DNA of 64,000 nt, taken from positions 51,898 through 115,897 of the forward strand of contig CBFFRQ010000075.1 of the NCBI GenBank assembly GCA_965644315.1, in the 5' to 3' direction. Below the pieces are notes generated by a model. It saw only the letters and a program-made list of their open reading frames with translations. It had not been told where the DNA came from and did not search any database. The translations under genes and the position numbers were made by a program. The stretch comes from Caecitellus pseudoparvulus (lineage: Eukaryota > Protista > Bigyra: Bicosoecida). Below, one piece after another: positions 43,892-49,005 of this stretch. Position 1 is the first letter of the stretch. Each line of letters begins with the position of its first letter.

Positions 43892-44133
43892 GGCAGTCTC
43901 AGCCGCCGCACGTGCAGCAGGAGCGAGGGGCGGACAATTCACACGCAAGCGGGTGCAGCTCGATGGAGAGCCCCCCTGCTGTGCAGCAGGCACCGTCAGT
44001 GCTGCGTGTGCCTCGTGGGGTTGGCAGCCCACCCCTCTCTCTGTTGAAGCGGGGGGCTTGCCGCACACCACCTTCCCCAGCTGCGTGTGTGTCGGGCGAC
44101 GCCGCGACTTGCGCGAGCACGTGAGCCTGCAGC

Positions 44134-46060
44134 ATGTCAGGCAAGGCAAAGAATGGCACTCGAGCTCCACGGCGTAAATACGCCGAAGCCTGCCTCCCAG
44201 TGCGTGAGCAGCCTGCCGGTGACTGCGCCTGGCGTCAGGGTCTGGAATGAGCCCAGCGCCCACCCCGTAAAAGGCGAGGCACAGGCGAGCAAGCTCTCCC
44301 CACGCCCCTCCCCTGTGCAGTGTGCGAAGGTGAAGAAACGATGCATTGGTGGAGTGCCTTGCCAGCGCTGCGAGCGCTTGGGCATTGAGTGTGTCTTGCG
44401 CAAGCCCAAGAAACGCCAGCGAGATCAAGGCCCTGACGAGGCAGCCTCGTCGAGCATCACGCAGCAGGCGGGCGCCACGGCACCTGCTGCGGAGGAGCAC
44501 GTGAGCAAGGCCGCCAGAACTGCTGCGCACCAGGCCGCCCCAGGAGCCTTCGCGAACCAGCTGCAGAGGCATCACCCGGCAATCGGGCCGGAGCAGGGTG
44601 TGACTGAAGTGGCAGGTGCAGTGCAGGTGACGAGCCCCCAGGACCCCCAAAGTGCGCGACGCTCTGCGCCTGTGCCGAGGCAGCCCGCCACACGGCTCAC
44701 CGCACACATGCCATTCCTGTGCAGGCAAGCAGGCAGCTGCAACACACCCCTTTGCGCCCCTTGTGCGAGATGTGCACGACAAGGTGAGGAGTGCCTGCGA
44801 CTGTCACGTTGCTCTCGTCAGCCCGTCACTGCCCCTGCACGCGCTCCGCAGCCTGAGACCCTGGCAGGGCTGGAAGGTGAGGACGGGGAGGAGGTGATGG
44901 CGCTGCAGTCTGCGCTGGCTGCTAGCCCTGCCGCGCAGCAGTTGGCGGCCTTCGAACCCATGTACGGTTTCCCCACGGCCACCTTCGCGAACCTTGCGCT
45001 GGAGGCGTTCCTGCGGTGGACGCCGGGGGACAAAGCCACCATCGGCATGCCTGCGTCGGGCGCCGTCATGTGGGCCATGCCGGGCGTGGCACTGCAGCAG
45101 GCGTTGCTGATGCGGGGCATGGTGGAGGCGGGGCTGCCTCGCCTGCGGTGGGAGAGCACGGTGCTGCGCACGGTGTACGAGCACGCAGACAGCTTCGTGA
45201 ACCCGCTGAAGTCTGAATTCGAAGCTGTGAACGTGACATACGACGCGCACATGCGGGTGTGGCCCTTCCGCGGCGGGCGCACGCTGCACATGTCCGTGCT
45301 GGACTCCTCCTTCTGCGGCACCCTGACGCAGCAGCAGAAGGAGCGCGCCATGGTGTTCACACGGGAGCTGTCCAACGCCTTTGAGGCTTGCTGCGACGAG
45401 GTGCTGCAGACTGGCCCTGGCGCCAGTGCCGGCGCCGCACCCCGAGGCGCCTTCGCCACCGAGGTGGCTCGTACAGCTTCCTCCATGTCCACGTACGACG
45501 ACGCGTCTGCCGGCGGCACTGGCGCAGAGAGCAGCAGCGCAGGCAGCAGCGCGACGCAGCCGGCTGCCATCAGCTTCGAGGGGCGCTCCTGCGCCGGGGA
45601 AGGTGGCCGCGTCATCAGCGTGCGGTTCCCGCGCCCCAGCCGAGACATGATGTTCCTCGTGCACATGGCGTTCCTGTGGAACTGGGTGCTGTCTGGCACG
45701 CCCTGCTCGGTGGCAGCCACCCTGCGTGCAGCCAAGGTGGCAGTGGCGGAGCCAGGGGACGCCACCCCCCCTCTGCCCCTGCCCACCCTGCAGTGTCCCA
45801 TGCCCTCCCAGGTGGCCCACCAGTACAGCCACATCCTGCACGGCATGCAAGTGCTGCGGGCGGTGCAGGAGGGGCGCAGCCACGACGCCAGGGCGGCCTT
45901 CCCCCACTTCGCAGCGGCTGGCATCCACGCACGCCTGGATGCCTCGGGCGTCGTGCGGGTGAGCGTGGACCCCACCGGCACGGTGGGCCTGCGCACCTTG
46001 ACGCCCGCCGCCAATGCCGCGCGCAGCATGGCATCTCTGTACGAGTCCATTTTCACGTAG
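44134..46060 (+). CDS. Zn(II)2Cys6 (GAL4-like) binuclear cluster transcription factor; intron 44200-44320, probable introns 44652-44724 and 44784-44851
   Basis: Splicing gives RRKYAEACLP|CAKVKKRCIGGVPCQRCERLGIECVLRKPKKR, which is Cx2Cx6Cx5Cx2Cx6C. Confidence 0.8.
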
Positions 46061-46100
46061 TTCCCGAGGCCAGCCGTGCACAACCTGTGCCTTCCGCAGG

Positions 46101-46746
46101 CTACTCCGTCACGCCCAGGCTGCGCGTGAAGGTGACGCCTTTGCCCGTGGCCGGCCCGAACAGAGCCAGGCCTTCGCCCCGCATGCGAGGCGCCTCGTCG
46201 CTGAGGTACGTCTGGAAGGCACCTTCGTCCTTGAATCCATACATGCTTGTGATGGCGCCGCCAGGGCCATCCATCTGCTGCTGCACGACGCACGCCCACA
46301 GCGCGCCGGCAGCCACCATGTCCGCCGCGTGGCCGCCACGTAGCCACTGCAGGAACTCCTCCACTACGGCGTCGTCAGGCAGGTGGGCTGTGACGCTGTA
46401 CAGCACAGGCGCTGGGTCGACGGGGCCCACTCTGAGGCACTGCCGGCCCATGGCCCGCGTGAAGGTGACGCCCTTCCCAGTGTCCGGCCCAAAGCGCGCC
46501 AGCCCATCAGCCCGCAAGGGTTTGGCCGGGCCAGCCTCATACTCGTTGAACGCACGCTTGGAAGGGAAGCAGTACAGAGACATTGTGGCGGGGGAGGTGA
46601 TGGAGCTGTGGTCGGGGTGCAGGCGCGTCACCTGCCCCCACTGTGCTCCGCCACTCACCACCTCCGTCACGTGCCCGTCGCTGAGCCAGGCAGTGTACTC
46701 TGCCTGAGTCGCCGCATCGGGCAGGCTGGCTGTGACCCAGTACCAC
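46101..46746 (-). repeat. Tandem duplicated domain (2 x about 320 nt) inside the GCKR-like gene
   Basis: YWVTASLPD..AEYTAWLSDGH...YCF..KRAF.EY...LRADGLARFGPDTGKGVTFTR versus YSVTAHLPD..EEFLQWLRGGH...YGF..EGAF.TY...MRGEGLALFGPATGKGVTFTR. The nucleotide string cgcgtgaaggtgacgcc occurs at both 46123 and 46456. Confidence 0.85.
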
Positions 46747-48593
46747 CAGGGCTCCTCACAAGGCCCACGTGTCAGCGCCGCGCGCAGACTGGGCTGCGCC
46801 GCGAGCGCGTCATCTGCCCCAGCACTCGTGCAGCCCGAGGAAGCCATGAGGATGGCCCGAGGCACGACTCGCTCACGGGTGCTGGCTACCTTGATGTGTG
46901 TGGAGATGGGCGCGTGGGCGATATCATCAGGCACCGCGCTGGCGCCTGGCAGCGCGTGGATGCTGGCTAGCAGGGCGGCCTGTGCCGTGGCCTCGTCGGC
47001 GCCGGCGAACTGGCTCACGATGCGGGCGCAGCGCTGGAACAACTTGTCGTTCAGGACGCCCACATTCACCATGGTGTTGTGCAGGACCTTGCCACTGCCC
47101 ACTTGGGCGATGGTACTGGTGGCGTTCAGCGCCCACTTCAGTGCGTGTGTCGCCCACGTCACGCGGGCGGAGCCGATGCCCCACACTGGCAAGGCAACGC
47201 ACACAAGCAGGTCTGGATGCGTGACGGCCTCTTGCAGCAGCCCCTGCACCATTTTCAGGTTGGTTGCACCTGCATCTGACGGGTGCAGCAGCAGGGCCGC
47301 CACTGTGGCGCCGTGCTGGGCCGCGTGCTGTGCTGTGGGCAGGATGTGCTCTTGCAGTCCCCGCACCCAGGCATCACCCTCCCCGCCTTCACCCCAAAGC
47401 ACAGGCAGCAGGACCGTGGCACCTGTCCACGTATCGTGAGGCAGCGCACTGGCGTCAGGCATGTCCACGCAGCAGTACTTGCTGGCGGCGCGCATGGCGT
47501 CTGCTGAGCAGTGCAGGGGCACTCCACCCCAGCCCCCGGCACGGAAGCCCCGCACCTCGTCGAAGGGGCTGCCGTACGTGTCCGGCATCTCGCTGGCATC
47601 CATCATGCCCATGACGCCGGACAGGGCGCCGCCCAAGTAAACCAGGCGCCCGCCACGGGACAGGGACGCCGTGGCGCTGTGCACCACTGGACACAGCTGT
47701 GCCGCCCCAGCGTACACAGCGGCATGGGTCTGCTGTGCGGCGGCGAGGGCGCCTTGCACTTCGGACAGCCCAGGCGGGAGCTCCGCGCAGCCCCGGACCA
47801 CCAAGTGCATGAGGGTGTCCAGGATGAGCAGTGTGGCGCTGCCGCCCTTCATGCGGGTGCTGCCAGTGATGGGCTCGGGCCCGATGACTGGGTTGATCAG
47901 GAAGCCTTCGGCTGGGTCACAGGTCGCCAGGCGCTGCACGACATCCCGCACGGTGTGCTCCCAGCCCTCCACGGGGGCATCCCGCGCCGCAGAGGCAGGG
48001 TTGAAGCCCACCATAACGGCATGCCCCCCTGCCTGCTGCAGGGCCCAGTGCACTTGCCCCGCCACATACGGCGCCGACAAGCCGCAGGAGATGCCTACCA
48101 GCATCCAGCCGGGGCTGGACGCCACAGCCTCGGCCAGCGCCCCAGCACCTGCCACAGCATCATCCTCCGGCAGCTCGTCGGACAGGATGAGGGCGGGGTC
48201 CCCCCCAGACACCAAGTAGTCACACACAGGCGGGTACCCAGCCCCCTCCAGTGCGGCATTCCACTGCCACGCCGCCAGGTGAGCGAGGCGGCCAGACGTG
48301 CCGCAGCCAGTGAAAACAATGCGGGCACTGCTGCCATGCGTCTTGATCAGCTCCACAGCTCGCGCTGCTGTGTCCACGAGCCGCTGTTGCAGGGCAGCGT
48401 CGCCCAAGCCCACGTGCCCGCGCCAGCCGCCAAAGATCTCATGCTCCGCACTGCGCAGCATGCGCAGGGCGGTGGCGGGCGCCGCCAAGTCAATGCTGGA
48501 CGTGTGTTCATTGGCTGTCTCAGTCACAGGCAGATCTAAAGCAAGGGACGGGTCCTCTGCTGCAGGCGGGGAGGCGCTCGCGGCCTCAGCCAT
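46101..48593 (-). CDS. Glucokinase regulatory protein/MurQ-like double-SIS protein with two C-terminal DUF4286-like repeats
   Basis: PVTETAN, GCGTSGRLA, GGDPAL..ELPEDD, GISCGLSAPYVAGQ, GFNP, GPEPITGSTRMKGGSAT, DASEMPDTYG and KWALNATST...GKV..NTMV...NDKLFQR. Two C-terminal repeats of about 100 aa. Confidence 0.88.
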   Translation of the reverse strand: MAEAASASPPAAEDPSLALDLPVTETANEHTSSIDLAAPATALRMLRSAEHEIFGGWRGHVGLGDAALQQRLVDTAARAVELIKTHGSSARIVFTGCGTSGRLAHLAAWQWNAALEGAGYPPVCDYLVSGGDPALILSDELPEDDAVAGAGALAEAVASSPGWMLVGISCGLSAPYVAGQVHWALQQAGGHAVMVGFNPASAARDAPVEGWEHTVRDVVQRLATCDPAEGFLINPVIGPEPITGSTRMKGGSATLLILDTLMHLVVRGCAELPPGLSEVQGALAAAQQTHAAVYAGAAQLCPVVHSATASLSRGGRLVYLGGALSGVMGMMDASEMPDTYGSPFDEVRGFRAGGWGGVPLHCSADAMRAASKYCCVDMPDASALPHDTWTGATVLLPVLWGEGGEGDAWVRGLQEHILPTAQHAAQHGATVAALLLHPSDAGATNLKMVQGLLQEAVTHPDLLVCVALPVWGIGSARVTWATHALKWALNATSTIAQVGSGKVLHNTMVNVGVLNDKLFQRCARIVSQFAGADEATAQAALLASIHALPGASAVPDDIAHAPISTHIKVASTRERVVPRAILMASSGCTSAGADDALAAQPSLRAALTRGPCEEPWWYWVTASLPDAATQAEYTAWLSDGHVTEVVSGGAQWGQVTRLHPDHSSITSPATMSLYCFPSKRAFNEYEAGPAKPLRADGLARFGPDTGKGVTFTRAMGRQCLRVGPVDPAPVLYSVTAHLPDDAVVEEFLQWLRGGHAADMVAAGALWACVVQQQMDGPGGAITSMYGFKDEGAFQTYLSDEAPRMRGEGLALFGPATGKGVTFTRSLGVTE

Positions 48594-49005
48594 GGCTGGC
48601 GTGGTGAAGCTTGCTGCCCGTCGTGCTCCTGCGGCTGGTGGCGCCGATAACGGAGGTGTATCACTGGAAGAAAAAGCTGCGTGTTGCACTTGCCGTGGAG
48701 GTGTTTCTGGGAGCGTCAATTGTGACAATCTGACCAAGTTTGTGGGTCGCTGGCCAAGAAACTGCGCTCAAGGTTTATCTCGCCTGTCCTACAGTGAGAT
48801 TGGGGCATGTATGAGTCGCAGCTCTGGTTGGGGCTGAGCCTTTCAGCGCCATTCTACACCACCTTCCAAACGACACACTGCACTTGCACCCCCCTGGTGC
48901 ACTTGACACACCTACGTGCCCTTTGCATGCAGCAGGTTCGCCTCCTGCGCTGAACGCTTGGGAGTCCCAATTTCCGCACACGCGACAGGCACCGCAAGTC
49001 ACGGC

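Follow-up and report, generated by a model that had tools for sequence, protein, structure and literature searches.

The window analysed here is a 64,000-nucleotide stretch of the genome of the bicosoecid Caecitellus pseudoparvulus (assembly GCA_965644315.1, contig CBFFRQ010000075.1, positions 51,898 to 115,897 of the forward strand). The coding sequence of interest lies at 46101..48593 on the minus strand, the strand of all its features given below, and is a single open reading frame (ORF) of 830 amino acids plus a stop codon (46101-46103). Its product is a GKRP-type double-SIS protein, a putative etherase, joined to a tandem pair of DUF4286 domains. This fusion is real and conserved; it is also rare and undescribed.

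The GKRP part contains three Pfam domains, in order. GKRP_SIS_N marks SIS domain 1 (residues 78-183, 48045..48362; E-value 5.6e-31), which could also be aligned to MurQ. GKRP_SIS_2 marks the conserved start of SIS domain 2 (residues 297-355, 47529..47705), where the MurQ chains in PDB align as well. The lid domain, GKRP-like_C (residues 505-607, 46773..47081; 8.7e-26), could be aligned with its counterpart in Xenopus and human GKRP. The respective scores of 107.1, 28.2 and 90.8 bits exceed the cut-offs of 27, 27 and 27.7 and place the protein in the GKRP family, bearing out a first-pass annotation, made from the letters alone, that had described an intronless double-SIS protein with the GKRP layout. 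The closest solved structures are those of Xenopus and human GKRP, with an E-value of about 1e-74 (8e-75), and MurQ structures rank after them.

For comparison of the motifs, each SIS half was aligned to Escherichia coli MurQ (b2428, from NC_000913.3). SIS1 possesses the phosphate-loop motif GCGTSGR (residues 96-102, 48288-48308), retaining the GTSGR loop as G98-R102, and its LSDELPEDD sits opposite MurQ VEGAEDS; within this segment the motif ELPEDD (residues 140-145, 48159..48176) brings E143/D144 into register with MurQ E114/D115. At the DASE position SIS1 reads GCGTSGRLAHLAAWQWN, LAAWQWN lying opposite MurQ LDASECP, and the motif is therefore lost. SIS2 reads MMDASEMPDTYG here, matching MurQ LDASECPPTYG; its DASEMPDTYG (residues 332-341, 47571..47600) aligns E335 with MurQ E83, and it is without GTSGR and without the EGAED stretch. 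Equivalents of the MurQ acidic residues and the phosphate loop are thus all present, E335 in SIS2 and E143/D144 with G98-R102 in SIS1, and the alignment reproduces the distribution of motifs that had been read from the sequence. E83 (DASE) and E114/D115 (EGAED) of MurQ reportedly have a catalytic role, as Hadi et al. are said to have found in 2008. The complementary motifs of the two SIS halves suggest one composite site. Residues E140, E143, D144, D332 and E335 are invariant in 11 aligned GKRP-like proteins (protist, haptophyte, fish, reptile and bacterial double-SIS), and the equivalent motifs are SQESSEDN and DAVECVPTYQ in frog GKRP and SREGTEDS and DGVECIHTFG in human GKRP. Since it is invariant in all of the aligned GKRP-like proteins, vertebrates included, the complementarity is no mark of the fused gene.

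Bacterial MurQ (b2428; PDB accession numbers 4LZJ, 1NRI and 4S12) is homologous in its SIS fold and shares the catalytic motifs, which are here split over the halves. MurQ is a single-SIS homodimer of about 300 amino acids per chain with two equivalent sites, whereas the fusion protein would be a pseudo-dimer of the MurQ-type unit with one site decayed. Vertebrate GKRP (PDB 3W0L, 4BB9 and 4LC9), which provides the best PDB sequence matches, has the same three domains and, unlike the fusion protein, no DUF4286 tail.

According to a 2026 preprint (bioRxiv 10.64898/2026.05.08.723886), which reviews and extends Veiga-da-Cunha et al. 2009, GKRP originated from a duplicated and fused MurQ, in agreement with the derivation cited in the first-pass annotation. 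The same preprint credits the Naegleria homologue with etherase activity on a par with that of bacterial enzymes, thought to serve the digestion of bacterial walls, and gives lancelet and reconstructed ancestral GKRPs as active etherases, as well as frog GKRP; activity was lost only in mammals, rat GKRP having none that is detectable, and the glucokinase-binding regulatory function arose only in jawed vertebrates. Since non-mammalian GKRPs are already published as active etherases, this part of the earlier interpretation is known family biology: the proposal of an intact etherase site useful to a bacterivore stands insofar as the complementary motifs suggest a single site, and it falls insofar as this was taken to be special, the arrangement being family-wide and published. 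Like the GKRPs of Naegleria gruberi and lancelet, the window protein has a double-SIS core and lid, with the phosphate loop located, together with E..ED, in SIS1 and with D..E in SIS2, and a bacterivorous or non-vertebrate host, with a proposed handling of prey cell-wall sugar. In those GKRPs the chain stops after the lid, giving a length of about 570-630 amino acids, whereas the fusion adds some 220 residues, the DUF4286 pair, and its etherase activity is predicted. In bacterivorous ciliates, murQ and anmK are among the laterally acquired genes for amino-sugar degradation (PMC13198582).

The last 221 residues consist of two tandem copies, in the same ORF and 44% identical to each other (BLASTP E-value 5e-26), as expected from the in-frame pair noted earlier: a DUF4286-like repeat 1 (residues 610-723, 46425..46766) and DUF4286 repeat 2 (residues 724-830, 46104..46424). 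When the tail was run against Pfam, DUF4286 (PF14114) matched residues 730-813 with an E-value of 1.6e-9 and 38.4 bits; the scores of repeat 2, 32.6-38.4 bits against a gathering cut-off of 25.8, make it a member of the family. Repeat 1 by itself gave a weak match (16.1 bits, E-value 0.014) under the cut-off, but it is 44% identical to repeat 2. It is also at least 42% identical to bacterial DUF4286 members and retains the family's Y, W-L-x-x-G-H, Y-x-F, Y, L-R and R residues. The resemblance to DUF4286 that had been proposed from the letters is thereby upheld. Among 141 family sequences W27, H32 and F64 are invariant and Y9, Y62, Y73, R82 and R101 nearly so, and both window repeats retain them, the invariant His of repeat 2 being H755.

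The best match outside the fusions is a complete 244-residue tandem DUF4286 protein (P0086; 7.5e-35) from a eukaryotic transcriptome in EukProt. A second stand-alone tandem, P0097, is eukaryotic too, since its contig also carries genes for L15e, GRIM-19 and FTO. The next-ranked relatives are stand-alone bacterial DUF4286 proteins with 42-48% identity, the named ones from Phycisphaerae; tandem DUF4286 clusters are present in bacteria also, and in a sample of 121 planctomycete genomes there were two DUF4286 matches. A maximum-likelihood tree of the family (141 rows, 118 columns) was without resolution and gave the eukaryotic copies no supported group. "Bacterial-type" is a fair description of the tail domains. 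Stand-alone DUF4286 proteins, whether from bacteria or the eukaryotic tandems P0086 and P0097, share with the window repeats 42-48% identity, the conserved residues and the barrel fold; unlike the window protein, none of those that were listed or inspected carries a GKRP or MurQ domain as fusion partner.

The fold of the tail was predicted using AlphaFold. The model of repeat 2, built on the 141-sequence alignment, has a predicted local distance difference test (pLDDT) value of 96.3 and describes a beta-alpha-beta-beta-alpha-beta unit. The single-repeat model matches 2od4, 3fgv, 2od6 and 2ftr with Z-scores of 10-12.4, and its structural neighbours at Z 9-12 include dimeric ferredoxin-like proteins of unknown function (2od4, 2od6, 2op5) as well as ABM monooxygenases, IsdG/IsdI, SnoaB, ActVA-Orf6, LsrG, EthD and Dabb proteins. 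A model of the 221-residue pair (pLDDT 91, predicted template modelling score [pTM] 0.86) matches the single-chain tandem barrels 2pgc (template modelling score [TM] 0.70), 3mcs and 3f44, and tandem DUF4286 and EthD clusters of the ESM Atlas (TM 0.77-0.79). In these models the two repeats pair within the chain as a dimeric alpha/beta barrel of the ferredoxin-like superfamily, a prediction that supports the same proposal in the first-pass annotation. The resemblance to EthD, an ether-degradation accessory protein, is a match at the level of fold only and was treated as coincidence. A mutarotase-like role, suggested by analogy with rhamnose mutarotase of the same superfold, was dropped, there being no mutarotase in the top 50 structural neighbours.

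The reading frame is uninterrupted from 46101 to 48737 (878 codons), and the 830 residues are counted from the first ATG, at 48593. This is the likely start, since the N-termini of the orthologues line up with it and the coding signature in GC content at third codon positions (GC3) is missing from the in-frame sequence upstream, with a GC3 of 0.42 there versus 0.78-0.82 within the ORF. The codon-position GC signature is unbroken through all segments of the ORF, both repeats included, and contigs of related strains show 13 synonymous versus 8 non-synonymous variants in the gene. The indications are of a marine flagellate host with an intron-poor, GC-rich genome (about 67% GC), and no intron is required in the fusion gene because its homologues are colinear over their full length.

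A near-identical strain copy, P0001, was found by a word-index protein search. The full-length relatives P0002/P0071 (791 and 807 amino acids) and P0003 (806 amino acids) show 43-44% identity over 97% of the query, tail included. The contigs of the orthologues are syntenic with the window, the order and orientation being kept for PhoPQ-related, L7Ae, a 351-amino-acid gene, the fusion, a 383-amino-acid gene, SDE2, a 248-amino-acid gene and BBS7. In all three fusions the reading frame is unbroken from the lid to the conserved repeat 2. In two orthologues repeat 1 has diverged beyond recognition and the family residues are kept only in repeat 2; among orthologues the C-terminus changes faster than the core. 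The locus of P0003 (L001) is on contig JAANST010594208.1 of GCA_024449685.1, an assembly whose contig numbering exceeds 590,000, which suggests a protist contaminant or associate within a large fragmented assembly of another organism.

To gauge how rare the fusion is, a profile built from the repeats was used in an exhaustive search of 1.84 billion representative proteins. The best 150 of 591 matches at E <= 1e-3 were nearly all stand-alone proteins of 100-150 amino acids, and the only GKRP-length fusions among them were P0001 and P0002. From the GKRP side, only three fusion clusters (P0001, P0002/P0071 and P0003) extended over the tail. No DUF4286 was found elsewhere in the organism's own genome (30.6 megabases, 215 contigs). 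A literature search for DUF4286 returned passing mentions only and no description of the fusion, so that the earlier remark that it was not among described proteins is sustained.

In a tree of GKRP proteins the three DUF4286 fusions form a clade (SH-like approximate likelihood ratio test [SH-aLRT] 100), nested in a clade (98) with all fusions of GKRP to ROK kinase, with or without GNAT, among them a protein of the haptophyte Chrysochromulina parva. These proteins (P0005/P0084 and relatives, many of them in marine metagenomes) have 1100-1330 amino acids and combine a GKRP-type etherase with a ROK sugar kinase and a GNAT domain, a chain that looks like a three-enzyme amino-sugar module. The haptophyte fusions resemble the window protein in having LSDELPEDD and DASEMPDTYG and a C-terminal partner after the lid; they differ in that the partner is a sugar kinase plus acetyltransferase and not DUF4286. 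The nesting of the two kinds of fusion points to a GKRP subfamily repeatedly fused to amino-sugar enzymes, and membership of this subclade, together with the identical motifs, is an argument for regarding the fused copy as an enzyme with a place in amino-sugar metabolism.

The genome contains a full-length, uninterrupted homologue of AnmK, of the anhydro-N-acetylmuramic acid (anhydro-MurNAc) kinase family (G000:C55:234202-235371, locus L008; E-value 1.8e-68). Judged by its sequence, it could plausibly make MurNAc-6-P, the 6-phosphate of N-acetylmuramic acid, from anhydro-MurNAc, the family also holding levoglucosan kinases. A BadF-type sugar kinase and a Glucosamine_iso family gene are present as well. 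A search of the genome for a ROK kinase resembling the haptophyte partner yielded none, the sole match being a protein with GNAT and GH84 domains. This 875-residue ORF (G000:C80:336935-339562; L023:3436-6063, plus strand) has an N-terminal GNAT followed by a GH84 beta-N-acetylglucosaminidase domain (NAGidase, 6.4e-64), a domain order reversed relative to that of animal O-GlcNAcase. The genome also encodes an unfused GKRP paralogue on contig C18 (G000:C18:1030803-1031024; L005:1420-3186, plus strand), which has 588 residues from its first ATG and no DUF4286 tail. It carries the motifs SQESAEDV and DASECPPTFG, and the GKRP tree places it and the fused copy in separate clades. The N-terminus of this paralogue may be incomplete or spliced.

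Taken jointly, the interpretation that we find somewhat probable is that of a genuine intronless GKRP etherase of the enzyme type, with a composite site and with the barrel as a ligand-binding accessory module. The protein would probably be a cytosolic enzyme in the state represented by the Naegleria and lancelet GKRPs. Its SIS halves would form a pseudo-dimer in which SIS1 contributes the GTSGR loop and E143/D144 and SIS2 contributes E335, and this composite site would convert MurNAc-6-P to N-acetylglucosamine 6-phosphate (GlcNAc-6-P) and D-lactate. The MurNAc-6-P would derive from prey peptidoglycan through the AnmK homologue. The DUF4286 pair would constitute one intramolecular dimeric alpha/beta barrel that binds a small molecule and tunes or assists the etherase, and would not be an independent pathway enzyme.

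The role of the barrel was approached through bacterial gene neighbourhoods, fusion partners and conserved residues. At two orthologous Phycisphaerae loci and on one unrelated contig of metagenomic origin, DUF4286 is encoded immediately upstream of a gene for an extracytoplasmic function (ECF) sigma factor; the presence of ECF sigma genes beside the closest bacterial DUF4286 genes at three loci, two of them orthologous, is a hint of a sensing or regulatory role. In these loci (L012/L013:6247-9423, L014:6238-9274 and L018:525-1584) DUF4286 is flanked or directly followed by ECF sigma genes, and a conserved gene of unknown function, specifying about 426 amino acids, comes after the sigma gene; the loci may represent a unit of sigma factor, anti-sigma factor and DUF4286. 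Neither murQ nor other wall-recycling genes were found beside bacterial DUF4286 in the loci examined. Other fusion partners of DUF4286 are CinA, CMD, DUF5677 and potato inhibitor I, with no common theme. That W, H, Y and R positions are conserved among the 141 sequences of the family is suggestive of a pocket. The single intact repeat in orthologues and the faster evolution of the C-terminus fit an accessory module, and a small-molecule-binding accessory or regulatory module is modestly favoured over a second pathway enzyme.

Several observations weigh against the interpretation of the protein as an etherase with an accessory barrel. The score against the NCBIfam MurQ equivalog TIGR00274 is 142.2 bits, below the cut-off of 302, and the MurNAc-6-P etherase subfamily model PRK05441 is barely passed (169.9 versus 168 bits); the TIGR00274 miss is expected of a split double-SIS protein, which belongs with the GKRP type and not with the MurQ type. 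NagA gave no match to TIGR00221 at E <= 1e-3 in a six-frame search of the genome, in which spliced genes can be missed. With no NagA found, GlcNAc-6-P may go to salvage into uridine diphosphate N-acetylglucosamine (UDP-GlcNAc) and not to catabolism; of the catabolic module proposed in the first-pass annotation, the supply of MurNAc-6-P by an AnmK homologue stays plausible and the catabolic end is in doubt. The presence of the unfused C18 paralogue means that the fused copy could have a diverged role. The probable cytosolic location is a reading of an N-terminus without an obvious signal peptide. As to the barrel, one locus has a GerE-type regulator gene downstream of DUF4286 and no sigma gene, one planctomycete DUF4286 locus has neither an ECF sigma nor a GerE-type gene, and the conserved His, Tyr and Arg are equally compatible with a catalytic site. 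Finally, no RNA contig crosses the junction at 46750. In the two true RNA runs coverage is confined to 45828-46172, at the 3' end of the fusion gene; a run labelled metatranscriptomic whole-genome shotgun yielded pieces at 46476-46736 and 47095-47546 with no bridge between them, and the sole bridging contig is probably DNA.

The alternative that survives best, although we consider it unlikely, is that the barrel is a second, cofactor-independent pathway enzyme of isomerase, ring-opening or oxygenase type, acting on MurNAc-6-P, the unsaturated intermediate, GlcNAc-6-P or D-lactate, and that the protein is bifunctional. Many of the fold neighbours are cofactor-free enzymes (ABM monooxygenases, SnoaB, ActVA-Orf6, the phospho-sugar isomerase LsrG and the EthD family), the invariant and nearly invariant residues listed above would suit a catalytic site, and sister GKRPs are fused to true enzymes, namely ROK kinase and GNAT. 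However, the literature search revealed no known activity for any DUF4286 member, the bacterial relatives examined are not beside murQ or other peptidoglycan genes, the CinA, CMD, DUF5677 and potato inhibitor I fusions have no common chemistry, and repeat 1 has decayed in orthologues.

It is very unlikely, in our estimation, that the fused copy has become a regulator or sensor as vertebrate GKRP did, its old site and the barrel sensing ligands and the C18 paralogue carrying out catalysis. That paralogue does have MurQ-like motifs, vertebrate GKRP retains the acidic residues yet rat GKRP has no detectable activity, and close bacterial DUF4286 genes adjoin sigma-factor genes; but in each of the three fusion orthologues all catalytic-motif residues and the phosphate loop have been kept intact, mammals are the only group for which a loss of activity is on record, lancelet, Naegleria and ancestral GKRPs being active, and the nearest clade is fused to sugar-metabolising enzymes. 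An artefact of the gene model, by which the GKRP part and the DUF4286 pair would be separate products arising from an internal transcript end or start or an unrecognised intron, is extremely improbable: DNA of 68% GC easily yields long ORFs and the true RNA runs stop short of the junction, but in three species the frame is held from the lid to repeat 2 although the intervening sequence is heavily diverged and has indels, the linker is just a few residues, GC3 periodicity is unbroken, and independent gene callers produced proteins of 806, 807 and 830 amino acids.

Downstream of the fusion gene, and convergent to it, is a Zn2Cys6-containing ORF (44087-46060, plus strand) that ends about 40 base pairs from the fusion stop codon. 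It has no match in the syntenic relative L001, where the 383-amino-acid gene comes directly after the fusion, and looks like either an insertion specific to the lineage or a gene that evolves fast. The 3'-3' junction between this ORF and the fusion gene is covered by RNA contigs X6 and X10 (45828-46172).

For an etherase with an accessory barrel, the etherase half adds one bacterivorous protist to a published picture in which GKRP homologues act as MurNAc-6-P etherases and AnmK and MurQ have been acquired by grazers. What is new is the association of domains: DUF4286, a family without a known function, has remained covalently joined through evolution to an enzyme that is well understood. This tie to GKRP supplies a short list of candidate ligands and a modest clue to the role of DUF4286. 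It also shows a GKRP subclade that has repeatedly acquired fusion partners at the C-terminus, namely ROK kinase with GNAT in haptophytes and DUF4286 in the present case, which is relevant to the later regulatory role of GKRP. In its strongest form the fusion would be a "Rosetta stone", DUF4286 barrels binding or transforming a peptidoglycan-derived metabolite such as MurNAc-6-P, the 2,3-unsaturated intermediate or D-lactate; we regard this as quite unlikely. If true, it would provide the first function for DUF4286, a family of about 590 representative clusters, and the bacterial DUF4286 proteins encoded beside ECF sigma genes would report cell-wall turnover products.

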